Both the position numbers and the translations under genes were made by a program. A DNA stretch of 64,000 bases, taken from contig CM075981.1 of the NCBI GenBank assembly GCA_038087875.1, positions 34,844,001 to 34,908,000 on the forward strand, read 5' to 3'. The notes beneath the pieces were generated by a model, which made no database searches, was not told the origin of the DNA, and saw only the letters and a list, made by a program, of their open reading frames with translations. Of the stretch, positions 2,209 to 51,720 are shown in pieces. The first letter of the stretch is position 1. The number at the start of each line of letters is the position of its first letter. The stretch is from Malacoraja senta. Taxonomy: Eukaryota.

Positions 2209-2699
2209 GAATCACTCCCTGGAGCTGGAGCTTCTTGGTTTCCTGGTCCTCCAAAAATATTCCAAATGGAATTTAAACAGGAGTGGACCCACCACCACCA
2301 AGCTCCAAACTCTGAAAAATAACAGCTTATTGCACTTTATCTGTTTATTATTTGTGTATATATACGGTCTATGGTATATAGACACACTGAACATTTATCT
2401 CCTGTTCTGTATTATGTTTACATATTCTGTTGTGCTGCAGCAAGCAAGAATTTCATTGTCCTATCTGGGACACATGACAATAAAACTCTCTTGACTTGGA
2501 CCGAAGCAAAAAAGGGTTCTTGGGAAATAAGAGCTACCTTAAATGTAATCGCTTCTGGTTGGGTACCTATGGTAGGGTGAAGACTATTCCATGCTTTAAT
2601 TATGCGGGGGAACTCCATGGAGCAGCCAGCATCTCTGGATAGAAGAACTTGGGTGACGTTTCGGGTAGAGACCCTTCTTTAGATTTCCTCTGGTTTTAG

Positions 2700-2800
2700 T
2701 GTTTTTAGTTTAATTTAAAAGATACAGAGTGGAAACAAGCCCTTCGGCCCACCGAGTCCACGCCGACCACCAATCACCCGTACACTAGTTCTATCCCACA
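2700..2800 (-). mobile_element. HE1-type SINE, 3' fragment
   Basis: Matches the reverse complement of the 3' end of the 6495-6810 copy (ggaaacaagcccttcggcccaccgagtcc). Confidence 0.7.
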
Positions 2801-3354
2801 CGTTAGCGACGTAAGTCAAGAGTGTTTTATTCTCTCACATCCCAGTTAGAACAATGAAATCCTTACTTGCAGCAGCACAACAGAATATGTAAACATAGTA
2901 CTCTGTAAACAATGTTATAAACGAGAAAACAAAACAGTGTATATTTATATATGAATATAAATATGTATTTATATATATATTATATATATATATATATAAA
3001 GGGTGATGGCTCGAAGGGCCGAATGGCCTCCTCCTGCACCTATTTTCTATGGGTCTGAAAAAGGTTCCCGAACAAGAGCACCAGGAGAAAACCCATGCGA
3101 TCAAAGGGAAAAGGAGCAAACTCCATATAGACAGCACCCATATTCAGGATCAATTCCGGGTCTCTGGCAATTTTAGGCAGCAACTTTATGGCCAATGTAC
3201 TGCCCCATAGTCTTGAACTGAATTAAAACATACAGTAGCTGTAAAGGGGGACATAGCGTCACTTAGAGATTTAAGACTGAAAATGGATAGTTTCTTTTTT
3301 TTTAGTAACCAAAGCTATCAACGTATAATTTTTTGTGTGTTGGAAAATAAAATA

Positions 3355-3582
3355 TAGTGGCACAGCTGGTGGACTTGCTGCCTCACATGCCAGAGATCTG
3401 TGTTCGAAGCTGTCCACAGGCACTGTCTGTGTTGAATTTGCACATTCTCCCTGCAAGCATGTGGGTTTCCTCCCACATCCCAAAGATGCATTGGTTTTGT
3501 AGCTTAATGTGTCTCTGTAAAATTGCCCCTAATCTGTAGGGAGTGGGTGAGGAAAGTGGGATAACAGAACTTGTGTGAATGG
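3355..3582 (+). mobile_element. HE1-type tRNA-derived SINE (diverged)
   Basis: tRNA-like head (gtggcacagctggtggacttgctgcctcac...gttcgaa) followed by the family body. Confidence 0.75.
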
Positions 3583-4020
3583 GTAAACAAAAATGCTGGA
3601 GAAACTCAGCGACTGAGGCAGCATCTATGGAGCGAAGGAAATAGGTGACGTTTCGGGTTGAGACCCTTCTTCAGACTGATGTGAGGGTGGGGTGGGGGGG
3701 TGGGGCGGGAAGAAGAAAGGAAGAGGCGGAGAAGAGCTGGGCTGAGGGAGAGCTGGGAAGCGGAGGAGAAAGCAGGGATATTCTGAAATTGGAGGTCAAT
3801 GTTCATACCGCTGGGGTGTAAACTGCCCAAACATAATATGAGGTGCTGCTTTTCCAATTTACTCTGGCCATGGAGGAGGCCCAGGACAGAAAGGTTTGAT
3901 TCTGAATGGGAGGGGTAGTTGAAGTGCTGAGCCACCAGGAGATCATGTTGGTTATTGCGAACCGAGCGGAGGTGTTGGGTGAAGTGATCGCCAAGCCTAT
4001 GCTTGGTCTCACCGATGTAG

Positions 4021-4580
4021 GCTCAAATCCTTCAATGTGCGCAATGATAAGCTGTACGTGTTTTACAACACTGTGGTTGCAAGTGTCATTTTTTACGCTG
4101 GTGTCTGCTGGGGCAACAGCATCAGTGTGAAAAACAACAAGAAGCTGGACAAGCTGGTAAAACGGGCTGGAGGGGAGAGTGGACTCTGGGATGGATGTGC
4201 TTGAGAGGCATATGAGGCGCAAGGTGCAGGTCATCCTCGACAACTATGGGCACCCCCTCCATGTAATTCTGGAGAGTCAAAAGAGCACTCGGAACAACAA
4301 CCGGCTCCTCTCCCTGCGCTGTAGAACGGAGCGGTTCAGGAGATCCTTCACCCCTGCAGCCATTAGATTTTATAATACGGACCACTAGGCTGTAGGGGGA
4401 TGCTTTTTGCGTTTAAAAAAAATAGTTAATTATTGGTCTTTTTAAGTATTTATTGCTCTCAGGTATTGTCCACATTGTATTTGATGTATTTTCTGTCTGC
4501 GTTCGTTTTGAATGTGTGGGTTTGGTGCTTGGGGGCTTCTGGACATCTGAATTTCCCTGAAGGGATCAATAAAGTATTTA
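4021..4580 (+). mobile_element. Rex1/Babar-type LINE, 3' fragment nested in the Penelope element
   Basis: Translates as FYNTVVASVIFYAGVCWG...ERFRRSFTPAAIRFYN; ends in ggatcaataaagtattt. Confidence 0.75.
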
Positions 4581-4747
4581 TGTGTTTAAGAAGGAACTGC
4601 AGATGCTGGAAAATCGAAGGTACACAAAAATGCTGGAGAAACTCAGCGGGTGCAGCAGCATCTATGGAGCGATGGAAATAGACAACGTTTCGGCCCAAAA
4701 CGTTGCCTATTTCCTTCGCTTCATAGATGCTGCTGCACCCAATAAAG

Positions 4748-4751
<4 letters not shown>

Positions 4752-4781
<30 letters not shown>

Positions 4782-4790
4782 GATTATTAT
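4752..4790. repeat. (TAT)n microsatellite
   Basis: Direct reading. Confidence 0.9.
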
Positions 4791-5515
4791 TAGGGCAGCG
4801 GATGCAATAGATGAGGTTGGAGGAGGTGCAGGTGAACCTCTGCCGTACCTAGAAAGACTGCTTGGGTCCTTGAATGTAGTCAAGGGGGAGGTAAAGCAAC
4901 AAGTGTAGCATTTCCTGCAGTTGCAAGGGAAAGTGCCAGGAAAGGGGGTGGTTTGGGTGGGAGCGGTCTCTGCGGAAAGCCGACAGGGGAGGAGATGGGA
5001 AGATGTGGCCAGTGGTGGGATCCCGTTGGTAGACAAAGCTGGAGAAAATCATCAGGTGAGGCATAATCTATGGAGCGAAGGAATAGGCGACATTTCGGGT
5101 CGAGACCCTTCTTCAGACTGATGTCGGGAGGGGGTGGCAGGAAAAAGAAAGGAAGAGGCGGGGACAGTAGGCTGTGGGAGAGCTGGGCATGGGAGGGGAA
5201 GGAGGGAGAAACCTGAAATTAGAGAAGCCAATATTCATACCGCTGGGGTGTAAACTACCCAAGCAAATATGAGGTGCTGCTCCTCCAATATGCGGTGGGC
5301 CTCACTCTGGCCATGGAGGAGGCCCAGGACAGAAAGGTCGGATTCGGAATGGGAAGGGGAGTTGAAGTGTTGAGCCACCGGGAGATCAGGTTGGTTATTG
5401 CGAACTGATTGTAGGTGTTGTGCGAAGCGATCGCCAAGCCTGTGCTTGGTCTCACCGAGGTTGATCATACGCTGAATAATCCAACCAGATTTTTGTTTGT
5501 AAGTGGAAAGAAATA

Positions 5516-6411
5516 CTAGAAATTGCATTCATTGCAACGTGTAAAAAGAGATGAGATACTGTATTGTAATTTTGCTGCATGTCATTGTGGTATATATCAT
5601 GTCTTGATTGGTGAATATGTTTAGTTTGTGACTTTATTTGAAGCAGAAATAATATGTGAATGCTTCAATGACCATAATTTCGACTGGTAACTACGCACTT
5701 CGTCCGAGCACATTATCGCACGTGTCATGCAAGCCATCTTAAATGACCACCTAAACTGTCATTTGGCAACCTAAAAAGCTGCCTAGGTTGCCCGGCTGGC
5801 AACAGAGAAAAAAAGTTAAGTGAGAGCCCTGACAGGGCAGGCCAAACAGCTCATTGCATTTTCATTTCATATCCATTTTCATTGCAGTTTCAAGCACAGG
5901 GCAGGCCAAACAGCTCATTGGATTTTCATTTCATTTCCATTTCCATTGCAGTTTCAAGCACTGGGCAGGCCAAACAGCTCATTTCATTTTCATTCAGGGC
6001 TAACAAATCATTTATCGCAAGTACATTGCAGACTCACAGTTCAGTTGATTCACAGTTTAGAATCACAATTTTGGCCTCTCCCTCGCGATCTTCCAGAGTG
6101 ACTGACTCATGTCCAGGCATCCGGGGTTTTATAGTCCTGCTGCCCCCCCCCCCCCCCGCCCGCCGGAAGAGGCGTTACCTTCATCATGGTGATTGACAGG
6201 CGAGAGGACCAATCAGCTGATCTTCAGATTTTTTAAACACTCATAACCTTTTTATTTTTCATCGATCGGAAAAATCCTTGGGGCTGCCTCAGCGGAGGAG
6301 GACTGTGAGTAAGATGGCCAAATATCATAGCGATATAGCGCAGCATTGTTTCTAAAATCAATGTACAGCACAGACAGGAAGTGGTGAAGATGAGACTTTT
6401 AGTTATATAGA
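5516..6411 (-). mobile_element. Possible non-autonomous Helitron-like element containing a ~62-bp tandem repeat
   Basis: Minus strand starts A|TCTATATAACT at 6411 and could end CTAG|T at 5516; only a weak 5-bp hairpin near the CTAG; the left boundary is uncertain. Confidence 0.35.
5832..6000. repeat. Tandem repeat, ~3 x 62-64 bp (gggcaggccaaacagctcatt...ttgcagtttcaagc)
   Basis: Three consecutive near-identical units, the last one partial. Confidence 0.85.
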
Positions 6412-6494
6412 TGTCGATTTTACAATCAAGTCCCCAAAAGGTTTATCTTAATATAATATAATATTGTAAGACAAGCACTGTGTCAAATCTTATA

Positions 6495-6810
6495 GGGGTG
6501 GCACGGTGGCGCAGCGGTAGAGTTGGTGCCTTACAGCGCTTACAGCCTCAGAGACCCAAGGTCGATCCCGACTACGGGTGCTGTCTGTACAGAGTTTGTA
6601 CATTCTCTCCATGACCGTGTGGATTTTCTCCAAGATCTTCAGTTTCCTCCCACACTTTACAAAGACGTGCTGGTATGTAGGTTAATTGGCTTGGTGTATG
6701 TGCAAATTGTCCCTGGTGTGTGTAGGATAGTGTTAATGTATGGGGATCCCAGGTCGGCGCGGATTCGGTGGGCCAAAGGACCTGTTTCCGCGCTGTATCT
6801 CTAAACTAAA
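6495..6810 (+). mobile_element. Full-length HE1-type tRNA-derived SINE
   Basis: A box tggcgcagcgg, B-box-like ggtcgatcc, family body, 3' end cctgtttccgcgctgtatctctaaactaaa; more than 12 related copies in the window. Confidence 0.88.
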
Positions 6811-22732: not shown

Positions 22733-22890
22733 NNNNNNNNNNNNNNNNNNNNNNNNNNNNNNNNNNNNNNNNNNNNNNNNNNNNNNNNNNNNNNNNNNNN
22801 NNNNNNNNNNNNNNNNNNNNNNNNNNNNNNNNNNNNNNNNNNNNNNNNNNNNNNNNNNNNNNNNNNNNNNNNNNNNNNNNNNNNNNNNNN
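22733..22890. other. Assembly gap (158 N) in APOBEC2 intron 1
   Basis: Run of N. Confidence 1.
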
Positions 22891-23699: not shown

Positions 23700-26600
23700 G
23701 AAAATAGTGGGGGGGGGGGAGACAAATTGGAAATACAAGGATGGAGTGAAAGGGAAAGAGAGTATAGGAAAAGTTAAGTAAGACACCAGAATTAGCGGGG
23801 CAGAAAGCTCACAAAGGGATGGGAGAGTATGGCCACGTGAAATAGGAATCGATGTGAAAGATGAGGTGAGTAATGGATTAAAAGTATTATATATGAATGC
23901 GCAAAGTATAAGAAGTAAAGTGGATGAGCTTGAGGCCCAGTTAGAGATTGGTAGATATGACATTGTGGGGATTAGAGACATGGCTGCAGGAGGATCGGGA
24001 CTGGGAACTGAATAGTTAGGGTTATACGTCCTATAGAAAGGACAGGCAGGTGGGCAGAGGAGGTGGGGTAGCTCTGTTGGTGAGGGATGAAATTCAGTTG
24101 AGGGGTGACATTGGGACTGCTGGTGTAGAGTCTCTGTGGATAGAATTGAGGAATTGTAAAGGTAAGCATACACTAATGGGAGTGATCTACAGATCCCCAA
24201 AGAGTAGCCTGGATATAGGGTGCAAGTTGCAGCAGGGGTTAAAATTGGCATGTAACAAAGGTAATGCCACAGTGGTTATGGGAGATTTCAATATGCAGGT
24301 AGACTGGGAAAATCAGGTTGGTTCTGGACCCCAAGAAAGGGAGTTTGTAGAGTGCCTCCGAGATGGATTCTTAGAGCAGCTTGTACTGGAGCCTACCAGA
24401 AAGAAGGCAATTCTGGATTTAGTGTTGTCTAATGAACCAGATTTAAGAAGGGAACTCAAGGTAAAGGAACCGCTAGGAGGTAGTGAACATAATATGATAA
24501 ATTTTAATCTGCAATTCAAGATGGAGAAAGTTAAATTAAAAGTGTCAGCGTTGCAGTTGAACAAAGCCATGAATGAAGGCATGAGAGAGGAGCTGGCCTA
24601 GGTCGACTGGAAAAGGATCCTAGCAGGAATGATGGTGGAACAGCAAAGGCAGGAATTTCTGGGCATAAACCAGAAGATTTCATTCCAAAGGGGAAGATAG
24701 ATTCTAAGTGGAGTAAGAGGCAACCGTGGCTGACAAGGGAAGTTAGGGATGGAATAAAAAGAAAAGGTGTATAACATAGCAAAGAGTAGCGGGAAGCCAG
24801 AGGATTGGAAAACTTTCAAAGGACAACAGAAGGTAACAAAATGGGCAATACAGGATGAAAAGATGAAGTACGAGGGTAAACTGGCCAAGAATATAAAGGA
24901 TAGTAAAAGCTTCTTTAGGTATGTTAAGAGAAAAAGAATAGTAAAGACAAATGTGGATCCCTTGAAGGCAGAAACAGGTGAAATTATTATGGGAAATGGC
25001 AGAAAAGTTGAACAGGTACTTCGGTTCTCTCTTCACTAAGGAAGACATAAACAATCCCCAGATGTACTAGAGGACAGAGGATCTAGGGAGAGAGGAACTA
25101 AAAGAAATTTGCATTAGGTGAGAAATAGTATTGGTTTAGAGATAGTGATGGGACTGAAGGCTGATAAATCCCCAGGGCCTGATGGTCTGCATCCCAGGGT
25201 ACTCAAGGCTCTAGAAATCGTGAATGCATTGATCATTTTCCAATGTTTTATAGATTCAGGATCAGTTCCTGAGGATTTGAGGGTAGTTCATGTTATCCCA
25301 CTTTTCAAGAAAGGAGCGAGAGGGAAAACGGGGAATTATAGACCAGTTAGCCTGACATCGGTGGCGGGGAAGATGCCGGAGTCAATTATTAAAGAAGTAA
25401 TAACGGCGCATTTGGATAGCAGTAAAAGGATTTGTCCAAGTCGGCATGGATTTATGAAAGGGAAATCCTGCTTGACTAATCTTCTGGAATTTTTTGAGGA
25501 TGTGACAAGTAAAATGGATGAACTGGATGTAGTGTATCTGGACTTTCAGAAAGCCTTTGATAAGGTCCCACACAGATTAGTGGGCAAAATTAGAGCACAT
25601 TGTAATTCGGGTAGGTTATTGACATGGATAGAAAATTGGTTGGCAGGCAGGAAACAAAGAGTAGGAATAAACGGGTCCCTCTCAGAATGGTAGGCAGTGG
25701 CGAGAGTAGTGCCGCAAGGCTCGGTGCTGGGGCCGTGACTATTTACTATATATATTAATGATTTAGATGATGGGATTAAAAGTAACATTAACAAATTTGA
25801 AGATGACACAAAGCTGGGTGGCAGTATGAACTGCGAGGAGATGCTAGGAGGTTGCAGGGTGACTTGGACAGGTTGAGTGACTGGCAGATGCAGTATAATG
25901 TAGATAAATGTGAGGTTATCCACTTTGGCAGCAAGAACAAGGAGGCAGATTATTATCTCAATGGTGACAGATTAGGAAAAAGGGAAGTGCAACGAGACCT
26001 AGGTGTCCTTGTACACCAGTCACTGAAAGTAAACAGGCATGTAGCAGGCTGTGAAGAAAGCTAATGGCATGTTGACCTTCATAACGAGAGGATTTGAGGA
26101 TAGGAATAAAGAGGTCCTTCTGCAGTTGTAAAGGGCCCTGGTGCGTCCACATCTGGAGTATTGTGTGCAGTTTTGGTATCCTAATTTGAGGAAGGACAAC
26201 CTTGCTATTGAGGCAGTGCAGCGTAGGTTCACGAGGTTAATCCCCGGGATGGCGGGACTGTCATATGATGAAAGATTGGAAAGACTGGGCTTGTATTCAC
26301 TGGAATTTAGAAGGATGAGAGGGTATCTTATAGAAATTATATAAAATCATAAAAGGACTGGACAAGCTAAATGCAGGAACAAATTTCCCAGTGTTGGGGG
26401 AGTCCAGAACTAGGGGCCATAGTCTAAGAATAAAGGGGAGGCCATTTAAAACTGAGATGAGAAAAAAAAAATTCACCCAGAGAGTTGTGAATTTGTGGAA
26501 TTCTCTGCCATGGAAGGCAGTAGAGGCCAATTCACTGGATGAATTTAAAAGAGAGTTAGATAAAGCTCTAGGTGCTAGCGGAATCAAGGGATATAGGTAG

Positions 26601-29980: not shown

Positions 29981-31810
29981 CCCCCCGCTTACCAACCATC
30001 AGCTAAACCTTTCTTACTGATGGACACTGGCCACTACCCTTCCAAACCTTGATCTTCTCCCCTACCCCAGGTTCCTCTCCCCATCGCCTGCCTTGGGCCA
30101 GAGCTGCCCTCAGATTTTCATGTCCACTGAAGTGTGTGCAAAGGGTGCCATCTTGTGCCATTGTGCAAGGCTCATTCAAAAGAGTGCAATTGCTTGTGAT
30201 ATCAGTGAGGGGTTGGAGAAGGGGGGACGAAAGGAAGTTAACAAAACATTTGCTGGGCCACCATAACCCAACTAATGTGTCTTTGCAGGCGCCGGGCAAT
30301 ACCTACGCATACACCACTGGCCCAATTGATCTTCTTCTTCTGAACCTGTGTTATGTGCGGGGGGAAAGGCCGGGCAGTTTTCCCCTTTAAATCTGCCCTT
30401 CTTTCCTGTGTAGGCCAGGTGGTGAAGGGCGACATCAGTGCCTCCTCCTGTTGAGATAAGGAGAGTTAAAAATACATTTGAAATTCCATTTCTTTCAGCT
30501 GTGGCAATGAACACTGGAAAAACAGTCACAGGCTTCACTGGGGAAACATGTAGGGAGGGGCAGAGATCTGAAAAAAGTACAACTGACTCTTGATCCGTCG
30601 GTGACACTAGTCATTGGGCTCATCTCACTGATCTCATCTGAGCTGTTATATTATAATAAAGCCTTCAGAGTTGCCACTTGTTGTTGATCATTTCCTTCTT
30701 GCCACAGTACATAGTACACAGTACATGTGTCAGAGGTTATGGGGAGAAGGCTGGAGAATGGTGTTAGGAGGGAGAGATAGATCAGCCATGAATGAATGGC
30801 GGAGTAGACTTAATGGGCTGAATGACCTAATTCTACTTGTATCACTTATGAGTACTCTGACCACACGTGACCGGAATATTTGATGTATTTAAAAAAAAAT
30901 TATAGATAATTATTTAACTGTATATCACAAAGTGTACCATTTATAAATTACATTAAAGCTCACTTGTTGTTTCTCATGCAGATACACCAATCTCTATCTC
31001 AGCCCCATCTCATAATTAGCATTGAGATAAATGCTAGTCAATGTGGGTGTGGTGATACTGGTTGTTTTCCAGGGCTACACTATTGCATGGAACATTTAGC
31101 TTTGCTCATGTCAGACTCCCTTTCCTCACAGAAGATTTTTGAAGTTAAAATATATCAGCAAAAATAAATTATTGGAGAAATTAACTTTTGATCAGGACTT
31201 GATCAAAGGCTTCCAAAGGGCCTGCTCCTGTGTTGATTGATGCTGACTACAAAGAAAAAATGCCTTAGGCTTGTTAGCACTATATCGCAGGATTTTTTAA
31301 ATAATTAACTGCTGAGGAACCAGATTCCTGATTCTGGTGCAACATCAGCAGATTGATGGGTAGCAAATGTAACCTTTATTTAAAGGATGAAGGGGAATAG
31401 AGAATGATGAGCCTGTTAGTGGTAAAATGCTTGAATACGTCATTATGGTCATGTTGGAAGAGCATTCCCAAACTCTAAGTATGACTAGACAGAATCCACA
31501 GGGTTTTGAGGGGGGGAGGGGGGGGGAATCAAGTTTGAGAAATCTAATAAAACTTTTAGAAGATTTATCAGACAGGGTAGATAAGAAAAAAAATCTGGAT
31601 TTTTAAAAGATTTGATAAGGTACTGCACATTTGATAAGCTTGTTACATAAAATAGGCTTAGAGAATAGGGAATAAGGATAGGGGATTAATTAAATTATAG
31701 GAAAGAGGAAAGTCATTTTCTTGTTGGCAAGCATTTAGCATTTAAAATGGTTGTTTGATTGAGATCTTATTTTGTTCATGCCAATAACATATGCATCTTC
31801 TCATTTCCAG

Positions 31811-32345
31811 ACAGCAGATGCCTTCTTCTTTCTTCAAGTTCCAGTTTAAAAATGTAGAATATTCTTCCGGGAGGAATAAAACATTTTTGTGCTATTCAGT
31901 GGAAGAGCAGGGTGCGGAGTGTCAGAAAACTGAAGGATATGTGGAGGACGAGCACACAACTACGCATGCTGAAGAGGCCTTCTTCACAGACGTCTTCAAG
32001 GAGTGTGATGGCAAGTTGCAGTATTCCATCATTTGGTACGTGTCCTCCAGCCCCTGTGCGGCCTGTGCTTCCAAAATTGTAGAGTACCTGAAGCAGAGTC
32101 CCAACGTCTGTCTCACCATTTTCATTGCCCGCTTATTCATGTGGGAAGAGCCCGAGATCCAACAAGGCCTGAAGCTACTGATAGCTGCTGGTTGCCGATT
32201 GAGGATCATGAAGGCTCCCGAGTACAACTACTGCTGGAACACCTACGTCGAAAATGAGGGGGAATCGTTCGCACCCTGGGAAGACCTACCAACCAGCAGC
32301 TCGGCTTATGAAGGGATTCTTAATGACATTCTACAACATGCCTAG
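31811..32345 (+). CDS. APOBEC2: APOBEC2 coding exon 2, zinc-dependent cytidine deaminase fold
   Basis: Acceptor tcatttccag|; FFKFQFKNVEYSSGRNKTFLCY, HAEEAFF (HxE), WYVSSSPCAAC (PCxxC), ARLFMWEEPEIQ, YCWNTYVE; stop TAG at 32343-32345; 113+535 nt = 215 aa. Confidence 0.97.
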
Positions 32346-34879: not shown

Positions 34880-36100
34880 TTAAAATTCCACACTGCTGTG
34901 GAGGCCAAGTCAATTGATATTTTTAAGGAGGAGGTTGACAGATTCTTGATTAGTAAAGGGCCTGTCCCACTTGGGCGACATAATCCACAAGTTCTGGCGA
35001 GTTTGCCCTCGACTCATACTCACAGCATGGTCAACACGAGGTCGTAGGTCTTTGTAACTCTCCTTCATGCTCGAGAGTATTCCCCGTGTACTCGAGGCCT
35101 CAGCTAGGTCGCGGCGTATTTTTCAACATGTTGAAAAATGCCCGCGTGTAAAAAATGGTCGCCATGGAAAAAATCGATACTTTTTTTACTCGTAGGTTTA
35201 GTCATAGTAGGTCGGCATGTTAGTCATAGGTAATCGAGGGTAGTCGAAGGTAGTCGTAGATAGTCTTCATCATAGTCGAAGGGAGGTCGAAGGGAATCGT
35301 AGGAGGCCGTCTTCACTCTCCACTATTCGGTGTCCAATTTTCCCGAAGCTAGTCGTAGCTAATCTTCAACATAGTCGAAGGAAGTCTTCTACATAGTCGA
35401 AGGAGGTCTTCATCATAACTTTTTTTTAAACTCTCCTAAACTCGCCAATTAGGTCGCCCAAGTGGGACAGCCCCTTGGGCGACCTAATTGGCAAGTTTAG
35501 AAGAGTTTAGGAGAGTTTGAAAAATTGTCATGTTGAAGACCTCCTTCGACTATGTTGAAGACTAGTTTCGACTAGCTATGACTAACTTCGGGAGAGTGAA
35601 GAGTGAAGACTAACTTAGTGGAGAGTGAAGACGATCTCCTTCGATCTCCCTTCGACTATGTTGAAGACTACCTTCGACTACCTATGATTACCTTCGACTA
35701 CCCTCGATTACCTACGACTAACATGCCGACCTACTACGACCAAACCTACGAGTAAAAAAAGTATCGATTTTTTCCATGGCGACTTTTTTTACTTGCGGGC
35801 ATTTTTTAACATATTGAAAAAAACGCAGCGACCTAGCTGAGGCCTCGAGTATGCGGAGACCACTCTCAAGCATGAAGGAGAGTTACGAAGACCTCCTACG
35901 ACCTCATGTCGACCATGCTGCGAGTATGAGTCGAGGGCAAACTCGCCAGAACTCGCGGATTAGGTCGTCCAAGTGTGACAGGCCCTTAAGGATGTCAGGG
36001 CAATGGGGCTGAAAGGGAAAGATAGATCAGCCATGATTGAATGGCGGGTGAGACCTGATGGGCCAAATAGCCTTATTCTGTTCCTAGAATGTATGAACAT
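34880..36100 (+). mobile_element. CR1 3' end split by the MITE composite
   Basis: gacagattcttgattagtaa resumes as ggatgtcagggcaatgggg after the insert. Confidence 0.75.
34957..35986. mobile_element. Composite of two inverted MITE copies (PIF/Harbinger-like)
   Basis: Outer TIRs agggcctgtcccacttgggcgac / gtcgtccaagtgtgacaggccct; TAA duplicated at 34954-34956 and 35987-35989; inner junction at ~35475; no ORF. Confidence 0.85.
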
Positions 36101-40694: not shown

Positions 40695-41782
40695 ATGTGA
40701 CTATTTGAAAAAATATATAAAAGATCATTATAATTGCCCTGCAGATGTATTGGATGATGCAATGCAGATAAAAGCTGAATCAGCAAACTTAATATCATAT
40801 TTGTATAATATTATCTTAAATGTAGAAATACCATCTACGGAGGGTATCAGAAGAGACTGGGAACAAGAGTTAGCTATTAAAATTTCAAAGGAAAGGTGGA
40901 ATGAACACTTATTAAATGTGCATAAATGTTCGATTAATGTAAGACATACTTTAATACAATTTAAAATTTTACATAGATTATATTATTCCAAAACTAAAAT
41001 CCATAAAATTTTCCCAAATGTATCATCCATCTGTGATAAATGTCAATCCCAAGAAGCTACTATAGCGCACTCATTTGTTTTCTGTACAAAACTCAAAAAT
41101 TTTGGATTGAAATCTTCGAAATCTTTACAAAATTATTTAAAATAAAACTGATACCCAAAGCAGAATGGATTATCTTCGGAATAACGGAAGATGGTCCAGA
41201 ACTAAATGTGTTTCAAAAGAAACTAATAGACTATGGGTTAATAACCGGAAAAAAGCTAATCCTAAAATTTTGGAAGAAGGCTCCAATACCAACTATAAAC
41301 ATGTAGATTTCAAATATGTTTGAAACGTTACACCTAGAAGAGATAAGACTCCTCCTGGCAGGTAAACCAGATCACTTCCACCTGACGTGGTGCAAAGGTA
41401 CTTAAAAAAAAAAAACGGAGGTCAGGTAAGGGGGGATGGAAGTTGGAGAGTTGGTATGTCCCATTTGCGTAATGCTCATAAAAACTATTTGTTTTTCTCT
41501 TTTCCCTCTTTCTCTTTTTCCTTCTTTTCTAGGGTCTATTTCTTAACTCTTTTTCATTTGTTTTTAATTTTGCTCTTATAGGATCTTCGTTCTTTCTTGT
41601 TGTCACATTTTCTACTTTCACTTTTTCCTTCACTTTCTTCTTTCTCTCAATCTCATCCTTTCCCTTTTCTAGTGTAAAAAAGAAACGGAGTACATTAATT
41701 GTAAGAAGATATAAGTGACGAGTACTAATGTATGTGGTTGTAATTTAATGTATTTCTAATAAATAAAAAAAATAAAAAAAAT
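40695..41782 (+). mobile_element. 5'-truncated L1 (ORF2 C-terminus, 3'UTR, A-tail)
   Basis: Protein closely similar to 1000-1839 (SYLYNIILN.EIP.T.GIRRDWEQELAIKISKE); frameshift near 41100; A-tail at 41759-41780. Confidence 0.92.
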
Positions 41783-42839
41783 TTAAACAACTCTATTTGT
41801 GCTCTCATGTGACCATAACTCAATGCAAGTTCAATGAACAGGAAGGGACTTGGAGTCCTGATGGATATTAATCACTCTATCAATAATCACAATCAGAATT
41901 AGTCCAGAACATGTCAAAAGTCCTACTTGCTAAACTCTACCAATATTGCCTATTAACTGTTATATGTAAATAACTGTGTATTACTTCTCTTTATCATAGA
42001 ATATTCAGTGCTTTTAAAGCCAAATACTTCAACTCCATTTGGCGCAGTGGGACATCGGGGAGAGAAACCAAACTCAGATATTTTATTTCACTTGGACTGA
42101 ACTGAGAGATTTGCTTTCGCTTCTCATCGTGCATCACAAGTTCTGATCATCTTCTACTTCAGTTCATAGATGGTAGCTAAAGTGATAAAATAATAATAAT
42201 AATAATCATTTTATTTACTGGCGCCTTTCTAAAACCTTACAATGCAAAGAATCACAAAAAACAAACAAACACATAATCGGAATAAATTAAATATAAAAAC
42301 ACCACAGTACACAAATCAAGGACAGAATTCAATTTCAAGAGCACCAAAAGAAAATAAGAAACACAAAAACACAAGAGCACCAAAGAAAAATAAGAAACAC
42401 AAAAACAAGATATGTTCCAATGAAGAGAAAGTTCTAAGCTACCCAATAATGAGCGGAACATTTCATAGTGTAGGTTTGGAATAAGGTAATAAAAAGTTGT
42501 TTCAAACATAGAATGCCAATGATATGTAGTGAATATTATTGCGATATATTTAGTATCCAAAATACATCCTGCTACTTTGTGCTATACAATAAAACATTGG
42601 CTGTATTTTTGTGCTGCTCATTTCTTTCATTTGAAGTGCAAATGTCTCTGCAGGCATCTTATCTCTAAAGACCATTCATAACTAAAATTTTAGAACCCTG
42701 ATTTCAGGATCCCCAATAGGATATAAATGAAAATCCTATGATCTACAAAAAAGTGAATTTCACACCTTTCAAGTTGTTTAATTGATTGATAACCAACCTG
42801 TTCAGTTGATTAACTTTATACCGCCTGTACAACATCCAA

Positions 42840-43310
42840 GATGGATGCAAAAAGCTGGAATAGCTCAGTAGGTCAGGCTGCATCTCTGGAGGAAAGGAAA
42901 AGGTGATATTTCGGGTTGAGATCCTTCTTCAGACTGAGAGTCATGGAGAGGGATACGAGAGATACGAAAAGTTACCGAGAACAAATGAATGAAAGGTACG
43001 CAAAAGGACAAATCAAAGCTAGCAACAATGTTCAAGGAAAGGTGGAGCCACATTGCTCCATCGTTGGCTGTGGAGGTGATGGCGAGTGATACAGTGAAAT
43101 TATGCAGAACAGTGAAACTAGTACAACAACTAGCGTGGGAGATGGACAGACAGATGCAAGGGTTACTAGGAAGTTAGAGAAATCAATATTAATACCGTTG
43201 GGTTGTAAACTGCCCAAGCGAAATATAAGGTGCGGTACCTTCAATTTTCGTTTGGACTCACGCTGACCGTGGAGGCCAGGACAGAAAAGGCTGGTTGGGG
43301 AGGGGGAAGG
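42840..43310 (-). mobile_element. Penelope-like element, 3' end
   Basis: PHLIFRLGSLQPNGINIDFSNF plus terminal repeat. Confidence 0.8.
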
Positions 43311-43658
43311 AGAGTGGGGAGAAATAAATCACATCAATGTTCTGTTGTATGACACTATTTCTGCACACCAGTGTTTTTACGACAGAAAAACGATGAACTA
43401 GTTAGAATATGTATAAATGATAGTGTTCAAACTAAAAATTACTTGAGCTAAAACAAAATATATAATACCAGATGTTGAAGTAATCAGCCTTGTGCTTGAT
43501 TTCCAATATGTTAGGATTCTCTTCAGATTATAACATAATAATAAGGACAATATTATTGCAAGGATAACCAAGATTATGGGTAGTGATATTTGCTCGTTGT
43601 TAGATTGTGTTACGGACCTGTGAGGTTCACTATGCTGGTCCAGTTGCCTTGGAACAAA

Positions 43659-44875
43659 TACGTTACAAATTAAAAATAGTTGATTGATTTCTGGTGGCCT
43701 GTTGTGTATCCCAACAACCAGATGAAACAGAAACAGCTGTTGTTAAGGAGGTTCACCAGGGTACACATCCATTACTGTCAAATAAGATTTCAATCAAGAA
43801 TTTTGTAGTCAGTGCACATTAAGAGTGTGTTTCTTAACCTACAAAAAATAACGATACATTTGATTTGCTCTCGTGCAAAGAACAAAGGATGAGTGATCAA
43901 GCATGTTAATATCAAAAACCCTGGTTGGCAGAGAATGATGTGTGGATGTAGAGGCAGGGGTCTTCCTCCATCTCCCTAGTGAGACAAAGACAAACTGGGG
44001 AACCTTGTATTCTGCTTGGGTAGCTTGCAATTCAATGGCATGAATATTCTCCTACACCCCCTTTCCCTTGCACCCCAAAAAAATGCTTAAGAGGGACAGG
44101 CCCATTAGCATTCAAGTCTGGAAAGGAATAATATTTATAGGCAGATACAAAAATAGTTTGAGGTGTCAACAATATTTCCACACAAGTTTTGTTGGGAAGA
44201 CCGATCTTCAGATACACTATAACACCACATCAAGTGTGTCTGGACAAACAAGACCACATTAGATTGATAATCAAATAAGAGTTAACTATTTGCAGCTGCA
44301 AGACAAAATTGCAGCTTAATCATACCATACTTCATAAAACAAGAAGCTACCAGTCCTTATAAATGTAAAATTCACACAATGATAAAGTCTAAAATATCTG
44401 TAATTCTAGCTTGCTGTCATTTTCTCGACCAATTTGCTGATGCAATTTTCATTTGTTTCAAGGCCCATCATTTTGTCATTCAATGGCTCCTGCCATCAAA
44501 TGCTTCTCAGACTAGTTTCAGTCTCTTCCTAACGTGCTATATTGAAGAGAATGTGTTTCCCCTCATTAAATTTAATTTTGATTGCAATTCTACTGTTTTA
44601 CCTTGCATATTCAAACTTTGATCTGTAGTCAGATTTTGGCAATTTATTTAATGAGCATTGATGGCGTACTGGGTGACCTTACCTGTGGGGTTAGTAAGTT
44701 GTAATGGGCAGACAGCCGAACAAATGCTGAATCATTCCATGTCTATTAGTAGCAGTATCAGTTTACCAGAATAGCTGGCAACTCCTTCAAGCCAGCAGCA
44801 TGCTGTCAATATTTTAAATATAACTGAAAAACCTTGAGATTAAAGAGATAGTGGTTACATGGAAGCTGTATGGCT
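43659..44875. repeat. Direct duplication, copy 1 (1217 bp)
   Basis: ~99% identical to 49119-50336; the ORF track shows duplicated ORFs. Confidence 0.95.
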
Positions 44876-47800
44876 TTTTAAAAAATATTTTTATTTTATT
44901 AGAAGTACAATTGTATACAATCATATTTTCATAATACCTTTTATGTACAGCTTCTTATTTAAAAAAAAAATTGTAATAAAGAAAAGAAAAAAGTTAGATA
45001 ATGAAAAATAGAAAAATGTGAGATATATAGTGTGTGAAAAAGAAAAATAAAGAGTGAAAAAAGAAAGTTGAGACATAGAAAATAGAAGAAAGAGAATAAA
45101 AGAAGAGAAGAGAAGAAAATAAAATAGAAGTAAGGAGATCATTTATAATCTTGACCATCCCCAGTCACGGATTAGCTTTTACACCTGTTTTGCACCATAT
45201 GTTTCCAAAAAGACGACAAATGGAGACCAACTCGTTATGAATTGGTCAAATGTATCTATTAGGAGGAATCGCATTTCCTCAAGATGTGCAGTATCCAACA
45301 TACTTGCAATCCACATTTTGAGCGTTGGTATTGGTGTATTTTTCCAAAATTTCAATATTAATTTTTTTGCTATTATTAAACCATAATTAAAAATTGACTT
45401 TTGAGATGAGCTCAATTTGTTCCCGTCTTCCATTACCCCAAATATAATCAATTCATTATTGGGTTCCATTTTTGTCTTAAATAATTTTGTAAATATTTTG
45501 AAAATATCACTTCAAAATCCATGAAGTTTTATACAAGAAACAAAAGAGTGTGTTATAGTTGCGTCTTGGGTTAAACATATATCGCAAATGGGCGATATAT
45601 TTGGATAACATTTATTTAATCTTGTTTTTGAGTAATATAATCTATGTAAAATTTTAAATTGGATTAGATTATGTCTTGCGTTAATCGAACACTCGTGAAT
45701 GTATGTCAAATACTTTTCCCATGTAGCCTTCGTAATTTTTATCAATAATTCCCGTTCCCACTCTTCTCTAATTACCTCGGTCACAGGTAAATCTATATTT
45801 AAGATACTATTATATAAATATGATATTAATTTTTGTGTATCAGCTTTTATATTCATTACTTCTTCTAGTAAATCAGGAGTTATTTTTTTGATATCCCTGT
45901 ATGTATGTCTTCAAAAAATTACAAATCTGAAAATATTTAAAATAATGAGTGTTTTTTCAGTTTAAATTTTAATTGTAATTGTTGAAATGATAATAAATCT
46001 CCCATTTCATACATGTCCCCGATCCTTTTAATTCCTAAACTTTCCCTTTGATTATATATCTTATCCATCATAGATGATTTAAATAAAGGATTATTCGCTA
46101 TCGGTGTTAACAATGATAGGCTTCTTAATTTTAAGGATAATTTTATTTGTTTCCATATTCTAATTGTATCTTGTATAATTGGGTTTTTCTTATATATTGT
46201 ATTGTTCATTTTTTTCGGGGAGAAGAGGATTGTTCCTATATTACAAGGATAACAATCCTCTTTCTCCATTTTTATCCATTCTGTCTGTTGAGTTGAACTA
46301 TCCAACCAGTAAATTATATTCTTAATATGTATTGCCCAATAGTAATACAAAAAATTTGGGAGTGAAAGTCCCCCGACATCTTTTGGTTTACATAAGTGTT
46401 CTTTTTTAATTCTATGTGATTTATAATCCCAAACAAAATTAGTAATATTAGCGTTCAGTTTAGAAAAAAAATATTTTGATACATATACCGGTATAGATTG
46501 AAATAGGTATAATAACTGTGGTAGGAAGCTCATTTTAATAACATTTATTCTGCCTATTAATGATAAAGGGAGTGTTTTCCAAAATTGTATTATTATATTA
46601 AGTTTATTTATTAAGGGTATAAAATTGGCATTGAATAAAGCTTTATGTTTTCTAGTAATCTGAATACCCAAATATTTGAATTTTTCTGTTGCTATTTTAA
46701 AGGGGAATTTCAATAAGTGTGTAGATTCTTGAGGTTTTAACATCATGATTTCACTTTTGTTCCAGTTTATTCTATATCCAGAAAAGGACCCAAATTCCTC
46801 TATTAAATTTAATAAATTTGGTATGTTCGTTTGTGAATTTGTTATATATAACAAAATATCGTCTGCATACAATGAAATTTTATTATTTGAGTCCCTAGTA
46901 TTATAACCCTGAATATTCGGATGGCTTCTTATACTTTCAGCCAGAGGTTCTATCATAAGGGAAAATAGCAGGGGTGATAAAGCACACCCCTGCCTATTAC
47001 CCCTTGATAATTGAAACTTTTGAGATAACATGCTGTTAGTTAATATTGGTTTATCATATAATAATTTCACCCATGCAATAGAATTCTCTCCCATATTAAA
47101 TTTTTGTAATACTTTGTATAAATACTGCCATTCTACCTGATCAAATGCTTTCTCTGCGTCCAAAGAAATAATTGCTAAGTCTTCTTCCTCCACTTTATGT
47201 GAGTACATTATATTAAACAAGCGTCTCAAATTATTAAATGAATATCTTTTGGGTATAAACCCCGTTTGATCAGGGTTTATCAATTTACTAATATATTTGC
47301 TTAGTCTTCTAGCTAAAGTCTTTGCTAGAATTTTCTGGTCTGTATTTAAAAGTGATATAGCTCTATATGAGCCCGGTTCCTCTAGATCTTTATCTTTCTT
47401 TGGAATAAGCGTAATAGTTGATTCTGCTAATGTTTCAGGTAATTTATTTTCTTTAAAAACGTAAGTATATAAATTAAATAGATAGGGGGTCGTTATCTCA
47501 TGAAACTTTTTATAAAATTCATTACTAAAACCATCTGGTCCCATTGTCTTACAATTTTTCAGCGATTTTATTGTTTCACCTATTTCTTCGATTGTAATTT
47601 GCGCTCCTAGTTCTTCTTGTTCCAAAAGGTCAAGTTTTGGTAGATTACATTTATCTAAAAAGTTTGTAATTTTACTATCTTCTGTTTTGGTTTTTGATGT
47701 GTATAAATTTTGATAAAATTGAGCAAATCTTTTATTGATATCTTTAGGTTGTGTTAGTAATTCACCATTCTCGGATTTAATTTTATTTATAGTATTTTCC

Positions 47801-49118
47801 TTTTCCTGTTTTTTCAGTTGACGCGCAAACAGCTTATGTGGTTTGTCATCAAACTCAAAATGTTCCTGTTTTGTAATTTGGAATAATCTTATTACTCTTG
47901 CCGAGAGAATTCGGTTAAGTTTAAATTTCAGTAGTATTATCTTATTATGTTTATCTATAGTGGGATCTTTAGCATTATCTAACTCTAACTGTCTTATTTC
48001 TTGTTCTAACAGCATCTGTTGTTTTATTCTTCTTATTTTGAAAAATTTCATATGAAATTATAATTCCTCTAATAAATGCTTTAAATGTTTCCCATATTAA
48101 AAAGGGTGAGGTACCTGGTGTATCATTTATCTCAAAAAATGATATCATTTGTTGTTTCAAATATTGATAACCCTGTAAGTCATTTAATATATATGTATTA
48201 AACCTCCAAAAAAAATTCTTTCCCGGCATTCCTTCAAATTTTACTAAAAAAGTCAATGGAGAGTGATCAGAAATACTACTAATATGGTAAGTTGGGTTAA
48301 TTATATATGGCATTAATTTCCTATCCACTAAAAAATAATCAATTCTTGAGTATGTTTTATGTACCGAAGAGTAAAATGAGTATTCCCTTCCTGCTGGGTT
48401 AGCAGATCTCCATACATCTGTTATGTTAGTATTTTTTATATTTGTATTTAGAAATTCACTAGTCTTAGATTTTATATTACTCCTTCTTTGTATTGCTGAT
48501 TTGTCTAAGTATGGATCTAAAACACAGTTGAAATCCCCTCCTATTATGACATTTTGATAATTAAACTCCAGTATTATATCTATAATTTTCTCAAAGAATT
48601 GAGGGTTATCAAAATTCGGAGCGTAAATATTTACCAGTTATTGGGGTAGCATAAATTTCTCCCGAAACTATGATATACCTTCCCTCTTTATCTGATATAG
48701 TATTCTTTAATTTGAACAGTATACCTTTTCGAATAAGAATAGCCGTACCTCTAGATTTAGAAGTAAATGACGAATAATATGTTTGGCATATCCACTTCGC
48801 CTTTAATCTCATTTGTGTTTCCTGTTTCATGTGAGTTTCTTGCAAGTAAATTATGTCGCTTTTCAAAGATTTTAGGTGAGCAAAAATTTTACCCCTCTTT
48901 ATTGGTTCATTGGCACCCCTTATATTCCAACTACAGAATGTGATTCCTCCATTCTTTATTTGCCTATCGTCTTGCATTGTATATCAAAGTAATATTCTTG
49001 AAACATATGGTGCAAAAAATACCTCCGTGTTCTGGACGTTGGGTGGTCATTCCAAATTTCTAAGTTTACATTACATCTCCTCCAAAAGTGCCTTAGATAA
49101 AGCAAGAAAAGTTGTGAT
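44876..49118 (-). mobile_element. L1 LINE with whole ORF2 (EN, RT, Cys domain) but disrupted; ORF1 missing
   Basis: ATG at 48977; SWNIRG, LQETH, GPDGF, YRAISLLNTDQK, DAEKAFD, RQGCALSP, LYADD; at least 3 frameshifts and one TGG>TGA; A-rich tail at 44876-44900. Confidence 0.95.
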
Positions 49119-50336
49119 TACGTTACAAATTAAAAATAGTTGATTGATTTCTGGTGGCCTGTTGTGTATCCCAACAACCAGATGAAACAGAAACAGCTGT
49201 TGTTAAGGAGGTTCACCAGGGTACACATCCATGACTGTCAAATAAGATTTCAATCAAGAATTTTGTAGTCAGTGCACATTAAGAGTGTGTTTCTTAACCT
49301 ACAAAAAATAACGATACATTTGATTTGCTCTCGTGCAAAGAACAAAGGATGAGTGAAGAAGCATGTTAATATCAAAAACCCTGGTTGGCAGAGAATGATG
49401 TGTGGATGTAGAGGCAGGAGTCTTCCTCCATCTCCCTAGTGAGACAAAAGACAAACTGGGGAACCTTGTATTCTGCTTGGGTAGCTTGCAATTCAATGGC
49501 ATGAATATTCTCCTACACCCCCTTTCCCTTGCACCCCAAAAAAATGCTTAAGAGGGACAGGCCCATTAGCATTCAAGTCTGGAAAGGAATAATATTTATA
49601 GGCAGATACAAAAATAGTTTGAGGTGTCAACAATATTTCCACACAAGTTTTGTTGGGAAGACCGATCTTCAGATACACTATAACACCACATCAAGTGTGT
49701 CTGGACAAACAAGACCACATTAGATTGATAATCAAATAAGAGTTAACTATTTGCAGCTGCAAGACAAAATTGCAGCTTAATCATACCATACTTCATAAAA
49801 CAAGAAGCTACCAGTCCTTATAAATGTAAAATTCACACAATGATAAAGTCTAAAATATCTGTAATTCTAGCTTGCTGTCATTTTCTCGACCAATTTGCTG
49901 ATGCAATTTTCATTTGTTTCAAGGCCCATCATTTTGTCATTCAATGGCTTCTGCCATCAAATGCTTCTCAGACTAGTTTCAGTCTCTTCCTAACGTGCTA
50001 TATTGAAGAGAATGTGTTTCCCCTCATTACATTTAATTTTGATTGCAATTCTACTGTTTTACCTTGCATATTCAAACTTTGATCTGTAGTCAGATTTTGG
50101 CAATTTATTTAGTGAGTATTGATGGCGTACTGGGTGACCTTACCTGTGGGGTTAGCAAGTTGTAATGGGCAGACAGCCGAACAAATGCTGAATCATTCCA
50201 TGTCTATTAGTAGCAGTATCAGTTTACCAGAATAGCTGGCAACTCCCTCAAGCCAGCAGCATGCTGTCAATATTTTAAATAGAACTGAAAAACCTTGAGA
50301 TTAAAGAGATAGTGGTTACATGGAAGCTGTATGGCT
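49119..50336. repeat. Direct duplication, copy 2 (1218 bp)
   Basis: See copy 1; begins exactly at the 5' end of the L1. Confidence 0.95.
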
Positions 50337-50984
50337 AACGGTCAAAGCAGACATTAGTGGTCAGGAAATGTTTTCAGACTCAGGGAAAATAGTGACATTT
50401 CCTAATGGCCACTATTGGAACTACTGTTGTATTTAATACATTCTTAATTTGCAAACAGACATAAACTTCAAACTCTGCAGGCAAGACGAAACTCAAATGC
50501 AGTATATTGAATATACTAAGATCTTCAGACTGAAGTGATGGGCTTGGGAAGGGGAGGGATTAAGTTTCACAGCAATGTTTAGTAATTCATTTGCATATTG
50601 CCTCATCTATTTCAACAATACGAAACAATTTTGAATTTTAAGTAGGAACAGGGGTCTCAGACAGATAAATAAGTCTCTGAAGTTGGCAAGCAAAACACCA
50701 GGCTGTTGGAAAAATGGCAGAGTCCTTCTTTACTGAAAGATACATGCTATATAAAAAGATATTAAACTTATGCAATACTGGTGCTGGCAGATTCTTTAGA
50801 AAATTTAGGAAAGTATAAAAGTTTTACTAGGTGCGAGGGCTTTATGACTTTTATTAAAGTGGAGAAAGAAAATTGAGCCGTTTTTATTATCAAAGTATTA
50901 AAGTGAGATGGATAGAGCTTCAAATCATGTGGTTGTGAACGAGCCTGCGAGATGTTTCCAATTGCAAAAAGATTGATATTGAAG

Positions 50985-51720
50985 GTAGACAAAAGTGCTG
51001 GAGAAACTCAGCGGGTGCAGCAGCATCTATGGAGCGAAGGAAATAGGCAACGTTTCGGGCCGTAACCCTTCTTCAGACTGATGTAGAGTGGGGGGGCGGG
51101 GAGAAGAAAGGAGAAAGGAAGAGGAGGAGCCCGAGGGCTGAGGGAGAGCTGAGAAGGGGAGGAGACAGCAAGGGCTACCGGAAATTGGAGAAGTCAATGT
51201 TTATGCCGCTAGGGTGCAAAGTGCCCAAGCGGAATATGAGGTGCTGCTCCTCCAATTTCCGGTGGTGCTCACTCTGGGCATGGAGGCCCAGAACAGAAAG
51301 GTCGGATTCGGAATGGGACGGGGAGTTGAAGTGCTGAGCCACCGGGGAGATCAGGTTGGTTAATGCGGACCGAGCGGAGGTGTTCGCCGAAACGATCGCC
51401 AAGCCTACGCTTGGTCTCACTGATGTAGATCAGCTGACATCTAGAGCAGCAGATGCAATAGATGAGGTTGGAGGAGATGCAGGTGAACCTCTGTCGCACC
51501 TGGAACGACTGCTTGGGTCCTTGAATGGAGTCGAGGGGGGAGGTAAAGCGACAAGTGTAGCATCTCTTGCGGTTGCAAGGGAAAGTGCCTGGGGAGGGGG
51601 TGGTGCGGGAGCGAAGGGAAGAATTGACCAGGGAGTTACGGAGGGAGCGGTCTTTGCAGAAAGCAGACGGGGGGGGGGGGGGGGGAGATGGGAAGATGTG
51701 GCGAGTGGTGGGGTCAGCTC
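50985..51720 (-). mobile_element. Penelope-like element, GIY-YIG end and terminal repeat
   Basis: CSRCQLIYISETKRRLGDRFGEH, VAQHFNSPSHSESDL, LEEQHLIFRLGTLHPSGINIDFSNFR; hammerhead core at 51049-51077 (-). Confidence 0.9.

Follow-up and report, generated by a model that had tools for sequence, protein, structure and literature searches.

The window analyzed here is a 64,000-nt stretch of the genome of the skate Malacoraja senta (assembly GCA_038087875.1, contig CM075981.1, forward-strand positions 34,844,001 to 34,908,000). About 11 kb past the stop codon of APOBEC2, it contains a minus-strand retrotransposon of the L1 clade that is bracketed by two direct copies of a 1.2-kb host sequence. The arrangement has the geometry of an L1 insertion with a kilobase-scale target-site duplication (TSD), and very probably one L1 retrotransposition in this skate's lineage made both the insertion and the 1,217-bp duplication. 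Coordinates of the features are given in Table 1.

Table 1. Features of the L1 insertion and of the duplicated target, in window coordinates (ORF, open reading frame; UTR, untranslated region)
Feature	Position	Strand	Description
Copy 1 of duplicated target	43659..44875	.	1,217 bp; adjoins L1 3′ end; 99.0% identical to 49119-50336; 5 derived changes
L1-clade element, 5′-truncated, inactive	44876..49118	-	4,243 bp; complete but broken ORF2 and ~300 nt of 3′ UTR; Pfam and solved-structure match
L1 3′ UTR	44876..45181	-	T/C-rich stretch in L1 sense, AATAAA, terminus T6 then A4; very high word depth in reads
L1 ORF2	45182..48983	-	frameshifts near 48612-48637, 47978-48057 and 45910-45940; in-frame stop at 45512-45514
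Copy 2 of duplicated target	49119..50336	.	1,218 bp; adjoins truncated L1 5′ end; 5 derived changes
Putative first-strand nick, GGCT/AACG	50333..50340	+	between 50336 and 50337 in pre-insertion terms; Leucoraja erinacea empty site
Putative second-strand break	43655..43662	-	between 43658 and 43659, 1,217 bp from the first nick; left repeat boundary
Derived in copy 1 (5 events)	43773, 43985 (deletion), 44651, 44695, 44821
Derived in copy 2 (5 events)	49357/8, 49950, 50030, 50117, 50247
Changed in both copies (1 site)	43959 / 49419

Anatomy of the duplicated unit and of the L1 element

The repeat was delimited by a self-BLAST of the window followed by global alignment of its two copies. The self-BLAST alignment is direct, its 1,218 columns include 11 mismatches and a single gap of 1 nt, and transitions make up half (6/12) of the positions that differ in the global alignment. 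A first-pass annotation, made from the letters of this DNA, had described two direct copies with about 12 differences (~1%), a lone minus-strand L1 between them, and an L1 whose A-tail meets the end of copy 1 and whose 5′ end abuts copy 2. Each of these statements proved accurate. Specifically, the 4,243 bp between the copies are a single element, and the repeat borders it at 44875/44876 and 49118/49119 with zero filler at either end. No separate short TSD belonging to the L1 was found at the element junctions. The pair is the sole long near-identical direct repeat of the window as judged by self-BLAST, and a search of the window and three orthologous skate loci for other direct repeats (length ≥60 bp, identity ≥94%, distance up to 15 kb) returned only a 91-bp pair. 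No Ns lie between or beside the copies; the only N run of the window, at 22733-22890, leaves the 20 kb around the feature free of Ns.

Judged from its sequence, the duplicated unit is non-coding. It contains four ORFs of 60 aa or more, none with a Pfam match, and an exact-protein look-up of its 80-aa ORF in both the copy 1 and copy 2 versions returned no record. The interval 43000-51000 gave no Rfam match. A stretch at ~49400-49600 (corresponding to 43940-44140) is present at high copy number in sequencing reads of the window's species and of a relative, with a word depth of 376-6,609 against a baseline of 8-52. A small repeat of some age probably lies within the target at this place.

The sequence between the copies is AT-rich (26-32% G+C) and encodes, in order and on the same minus strand, an APE endonuclease and a reverse transcriptase (RT). 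The endonuclease occupies 48983-47978 as two adjoining pieces (48983-48612 and 48637-47978; Pfam Exo_endo_phos, E = 1.2e-8 and 7e-5), and the RT occupies 48057-45940 (RVT_1, E = 8e-43). A weak match to zf-RVT follows on the same strand at 45910-45515 (E = 2e-5), its 25.4 bits falling just under the Pfam cut-off of 27.5. In a comparison of the RT piece with solved structures, a set without CR1, L2 and RTE structures, human L1 ORF2p was the best match (E = 1e-116 over residues 317-956), with R2 proteins reaching only 1e-25. By its predicted protein domains the element is an L1-clade retrotransposon of the type that lacks long terminal repeats (non-LTR).

This copy of the L1 is dead, because its ORF2 is interrupted by three frameshifts and one in-frame stop. 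Other copies of the family in the reads of the species show small indel differences at or near the same breaks. The 5′ end of the element lies ~140 nt upstream of the ORF2 start, directly against the first base of copy 2, and ORF1 is consequently missing from this copy; a 53-aa open stretch upstream of ORF2 has no Pfam match. At the opposite end, the last ~30 nt of the element (...TTCTAATAAAATAAAAATA, then T6 and A4) match by eye the termini of two other L1 copies of the window, which end near 2208 and 41788, showing that the true 3′ end of the L1 is in direct contact with the final base of copy 1. The element has an AATAAA signal and ends in just 4 A, preceded by the unusual T6.

Parts of the stretch occur in 18 public sequencing runs, all as Logan contigs, with ~70% of its sampled words in two runs, X16 and X17, which represent two samples of one organism. 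Contigs matching the L1 portion number in the thousands, and their word depth is 10^4 to 10^5 in X16, X17 and a run from a relative, X2. The L1 family is thus very abundant, and partly young, in the reads of these skates.

Empty sites in related skates and divergence of the copies

The orthologous loci of Amblyraja radiata, Rhinoraja longicauda (L002) and L. erinacea (L003) were compared with the window, each with 10-kb flanks. Window positions 43507-44875 and 49119-50511 both align, at 94-95% identity, to one continuous stretch of L. erinacea (L003 28763-30306), in which the left flank, a single unit (L003 28912-30131) and the right flank follow one another with no L1. This is the empty single-copy allele that the first-pass annotation had proposed to seek among orthologues. 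Both of its junctions are uninterrupted. The left junction reads ...GGAATAAA/TACGTTACAAATT and the right junction reads ...GTATGGCT/AACGGTCAAAGC (slashes mark the junctions), the latter being exactly the predicted pre-insertion site, GGCT/AACGG. The site ggcT/AAc, which the annotation had deduced for the state before insertion, can therefore be read directly in the orthologous empty site of L. erinacea.

In R. longicauda, the last 290 bp of the unit are joined straight to the right flank, again with no L1 and with an 8-bp deletion at the site. As the sites of L. erinacea and R. longicauda have neither the duplication nor the L1, both arose in the lineage of the window. The annotation had named relatives carrying the duplication without the L1 as evidence that would count against a joint origin; what these two skates show is the opposite, a single unit in one and a direct join of unit and right flank in the other. 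The left flank of A. radiata is continuous with the first ~1,080 bp of the unit, the compared sequence ending inside the unit at ~1082. The reads of a third relative (X2, ~95% identical) contain a contig that covers the unit and the right flank and then continues 289 nt past 49119 into non-L1 sequence, which is the pattern of an empty site.

Other length differences are present at this locus. R. longicauda is without window positions 43123-44582 (1.46 kb, most of the unit; compare L002 17967-17969), which are present in L. erinacea and A. radiata, and either Rhinoraja has deleted them or they were inserted in the common ancestor of the remaining skates. Two segments to the left of the unit, 42188-42408 and 43117-43506 (~220 and ~390 bp), are absent at the orthologous places in L. 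erinacea and A. radiata and are probably further lineage-specific insertions.

The differences between the two copies were polarized with the outgroup skates as reference. Derived changes are split 5 to 5 between the copies, as fits copies that were identical at birth, and one further site has changed in both. Divergence is 0.009 between the copies, 0.048 from the copies to L. erinacea and 0.015 between L. erinacea and A. radiata. In the middle of the unit, 503 bp (43986-44488 = 49447-49949) contain zero differences between the copies and yet are 5.0% diverged from L. erinacea, like the rest of the unit (P ~ 0.03); outside this segment the copies differ by 1.5%. Because the 503-bp gap in the differences coincides with a normal rate of change between species, the central segment is probably a gene-conversion tract between the copies.

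The insertion occurred after the split from the Leucoraja/Amblyraja lineage, and these values place it at roughly one-fifth to one-third of that divergence. The first-pass annotation had held that the divergence between the copies dates the insertion. A loose date is indeed obtained in this way; a clean clock is not, given the difference-free tract of 503 bp and the finding that X16 shows only copy-2 states (discussed below).

Strand breaks, read evidence and alternative origins

Target-primed reverse transcription (TPRT), the route by which L1 integrates, usually gives a spacing of 7-20 bp between the two strand breaks. Starting from the observed geometry, the identity and ends of the element, the empty site and the lineage-specific origin, the events at this locus can be reconstructed as follows. 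The L1 endonuclease would have nicked the plus strand at GGCT/AACG, and the 3′ end thus exposed would have served as primer for the reverse transcription of an L1 RNA, beginning in its short A tail, a step that the anatomy of the element itself attests. Copying would have halted ~140 nt upstream of ORF2, leaving a 5′-truncated copy. The opposite strand would have been broken not 7-20 bp but 1,217 bp away, at 43658/43659, and repair synthesis would then have filled both long single-stranded stretches, placing the 1,217-bp target on each side of the L1. A distant second-strand nick that duplicated 1.2 kb of host DNA had already been proposed in the first-pass annotation, and it is supported by the TSD geometry, by the lack of a short TSD proper to the L1 and by the empty site in relatives. 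In agreement with the geometry, the L1 tail in the window is preceded by an identical GGCT at 44872-44875. The first base of the repeat, a T, could instead represent a 1-nt microhomology with the 5′ end of the L1.

Four of the public runs were placed on positions 44801-50800; the depth given for their contigs is a flat mean and gives no copy number. Run X16 contains a 1,887-nt contig that starts exactly at 49119 and matches the window without a difference along copy 2 and on into the right flank. The chance of a contig ending at this exact base is ~0.003, and such a start is the signature of a branch in a k = 31 de Bruijn graph with two left neighbors, here the left flank and the L1. Run X17 contains a 2,345-nt contig over the same span, which continues for 460 nt beyond 49119 in sequence that does not match the L1 and that we infer to be the left flank. 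This contig has the copy-1 state at 5 sites and the copy-2 state at the others, interleaved, with derived states of both copies among them. Both versions must therefore be present in the sample, and the contig is a bubble-popped mosaic of the two. In both X16 and X17, the copy and 464 bp of the right flank showed no further differences, so that the variable sites are only those that distinguish the copies.

Several observations weigh against a single retrotransposition as the source of the whole structure. The nick site GGCT/AACG has a single T and no T run, matching only the T/AA core of the L1 preference (TTTT/AA); the likeness to a TT/AA preference that the first-pass annotation had noted is thus limited to the T/AA core. 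The A tail of the L1 is just 4 nt long and follows an odd T6, and the left boundary, CGTA/TTTG on the minus strand, is unlike an L1 endonuclease site. Nevertheless, a poor nick site, a short tail and a left boundary of this kind fit a published idea of a distal, unrelated nick (PMC5223499). The L1 carries at least three frameshifts and a stop, whereas the 1.2-kb copies differ by one indel, which means either that the L1 source was already defective or that the L1 is older than the copies look. Among the read records listed, no contig bridges 44875/44876 or 49118/49119, the evidence for the filled structure being the assembly together with indirect signs. Finally, the X16 contig has copy-2 states at 9 of 9 variable places, an outcome expected about 1 time in 512 under random bubble popping at equal coverage. 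Possible explanations are conversion of copy 1 to copy-2 states in that fish and heterozygosity of the fish for filled and empty alleles.

An alternative that would account for the unusual ends is improbable in our estimation. It holds either that the structure arose in two steps, a tandem duplication being followed by an L1 insertion at its joint, or that an L1 complementary DNA (cDNA) was captured independently of the endonuclease during double-strand break repair with local re-synthesis. The poor nick site with its one T, the very short tail and the left boundary that is not endonuclease-like would all suit such an origin, and repair-mediated duplications with captured DNA have been documented in vertebrate genomes (PMC2671141). 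In the two-step version, however, the L1 must have hit the joint exactly, without gain or loss of a single base and without making its own TSD, for which the chance is ~1 in 2,400 for an insertion within the pair. Moreover, a duplication without the L1 was seen in neither of the relatives in which it was sought, L. erinacea and R. longicauda. Endonuclease-independent insertions are typically 3′-truncated and tailless, whereas the L1 described here retains its complete canonical 3′ terminus and meets a T/AA site with an A run, contrary to what capture would predict. Tailless L1 events are discussed in PMC5223499.

An assembly artefact appears about as improbable. In this case the unit would be single-copy, and two haplotypes differing by ~1% would have been misjoined around a heterozygous L1 insertion. 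The 1% difference between the copies is within the allelic range, the derived states are evenly split as those of two alleles would be, the pure copy-2 states of X16 and the mixture in X17 resemble a homozygote and a heterozygote, and the listed records include none that bridges a junction. Against this, a heterozygous ordinary insertion yields no read that joins the 5′ end of the L1 to a point 1,217 bp upstream, and the join at 49118/49119 would require a chimeric read that restored a perfect TSD geometry by chance. The copies also lie without Ns nearby, and the start of the X16 contig at exactly 49119 would be meaningless (chance ~0.003). Moreover, heterozygosity between two haplotypes is hard to reconcile with the complete lack, in X16 and X17, of variants in the unit and right flank other than the copy-distinguishing sites.

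Less credible than either is an RNA-templated origin of the second copy, in which the RT would switch from the L1 RNA to a minus-strand host transcript of the locus and copy 1.2 kb of it, and the end of the cDNA would be joined by homology at the original site. Switching of the L1 RT to other RNAs is established, with U6/L1 chimeras cited in PMC6789731, and a minus-strand Macro-domain gene of A. radiata has an annotated range that takes in the region. The sequence itself gives no reason to invoke this route, however, which demands both that the transcript 5′ end or the switch point coincide with 43659 and that a seamless homology-driven join be made at the right flank. In the literature searched it was not found as a route to kilobase-scale direct duplications.

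Three further candidates were rejected. An LTR retrotransposon would likewise present two 1.2-kb direct repeats, 99% alike, around a 4.2-kb RT-coding interior, but the interior is that of an L1 with APE and RT rather than gag-pol, the repeat is resident host DNA in relatives, the repeats have no TG...CA ends and no 4-6-bp TSD lies outside them. Tandem duplication of a 5.46-kb unit is inconsistent with the flanks, neither of which continues as L1, and 5′ or 3′ transduction is inconsistent with a unit that is native to the locus and has no poly(A) at the outer ends of its copies.

Relation to known L1 duplications and genomic surroundings

Retrotransposition with a large TSD, our preferred account of the skate locus, has precedents in cultured cells and tumors. 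L1 TSDs of more than 100 bp make up <10% of events in HeLa cells, and in cells deficient in nucleotide excision repair such TSDs have a median length of 1.5 kb and extend up to 5.3 kb (PMC5223499, citing Gilbert 2002/2005 and Symer 2002). Like the skate insertion, these human L1 events comprise a 5′-truncated element with an A-tailed 3′ end at a T/A-type nick and a direct duplication, in a size range that includes 1.2 kb. They involve engineered elements in cell lines and are commonest where nucleotide excision repair is defective. The skate L1, in contrast, is natural, inherited through the germline of a cartilaginous fish and flanked by copies that have diverged by ~1%, and it has a far shorter tail and a poorer nick site.

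The term 'large TSDs' has been applied to tandem duplications of 1-10 kb associated with L1 insertions (bioRxiv 10.1101/2024.12.14.628481), and megabase tandem duplications bounded by L1 are found in tumors (PMC7058536). The duplications in these tumors and in clones with induced L1 resemble the skate locus in having an L1 at the tandem duplication joint. Their 3′ junction carries an endonuclease-type motif, of which the skate site keeps the T/AA core, and they are somatic, unlike the inherited skate insertion. Ordinary germline insertions involve the same element class and show the same 5′ truncation, but human polymorphic germline L1 TSDs are mostly 10-20 bp, with a median of 21 bp (PMC12350158), and the skate TSD is ~60-100 times longer than that of an ordinary germline insertion. 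For a naturally fixed kilobase-scale L1 TSD, the literature searched gave cases from cell culture and tumors only, a limited search that does not prove that none has been published. Most likely, the skate locus is a natural, inherited example of the already known giant type of L1 TSD.

Records of kilobase-scale TSDs come almost entirely from engineered assays and tumors. The skate locus offers the element, the two copies that flank it and, in two further skate genera, the orthologous sites without an insertion, and it indicates that a small segmental duplication can persist in a genome after aberrant L1 integration. Nothing functional was copied in this instance, and no functional consequence is visible. 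A broader proposal, which we put forward tentatively and consider rather unlikely, is that long TSDs (0.1-2.5 kb) are a regular outcome of L1 integration in the germline of this skate, perhaps for other non-LTR elements too. If so, the coupling between first- and second-strand breakage would be loose in a lineage- or family-specific manner, and the elements would continually generate small tandem duplications, a part of which would copy exons. Should long TSDs hold genome-wide, skates would offer a natural system for studying the distance between strand breaks in TPRT and the rate at which long interspersed nuclear elements (LINEs) duplicate exons and regulatory DNA.

Before the insertion considered here, an ORF at 31791-32345 (+) represents the principal coding exon of APOBEC2 (Pfam APOBEC2, E = 7e-61). 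Its closest proteins are those of A. radiata (95%), R. longicauda (93%) and L. erinacea (92%). In the annotations of the relatives, a convergent Macro-domain (OARD1-like) gene lies downstream of APOBEC2, and its annotated range in A. radiata overlaps the region of the feature.

The window contains other LINE sequences. A 5′-truncated L1 fragment of another subfamily at 40695-41777 (+) lies at a TTTT/G site with an A-run TSD no longer than 4-5 nt. L. erinacea, A. radiata and R. longicauda all lack it at the orthologous place, where the empty site reads TTGTCAAAA/TTTAAAC. An ordinary L1 insertion of this lineage, it provides a contrast to the one described above. A LINE fragment with Exo_endo_phos_2 and RVT_1 domains is located at 24050-25693 (+). 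Finally, an inverted self-match of ~1 kb (82.6% identity) is found at 34956-35987; its left arm is ~81% like the reverse of the relatives' sequence and its right arm is 91% like it in the forward direction, so that the two arms are probably old copies of one repeat family in opposite orientations and not a recent fold-back.

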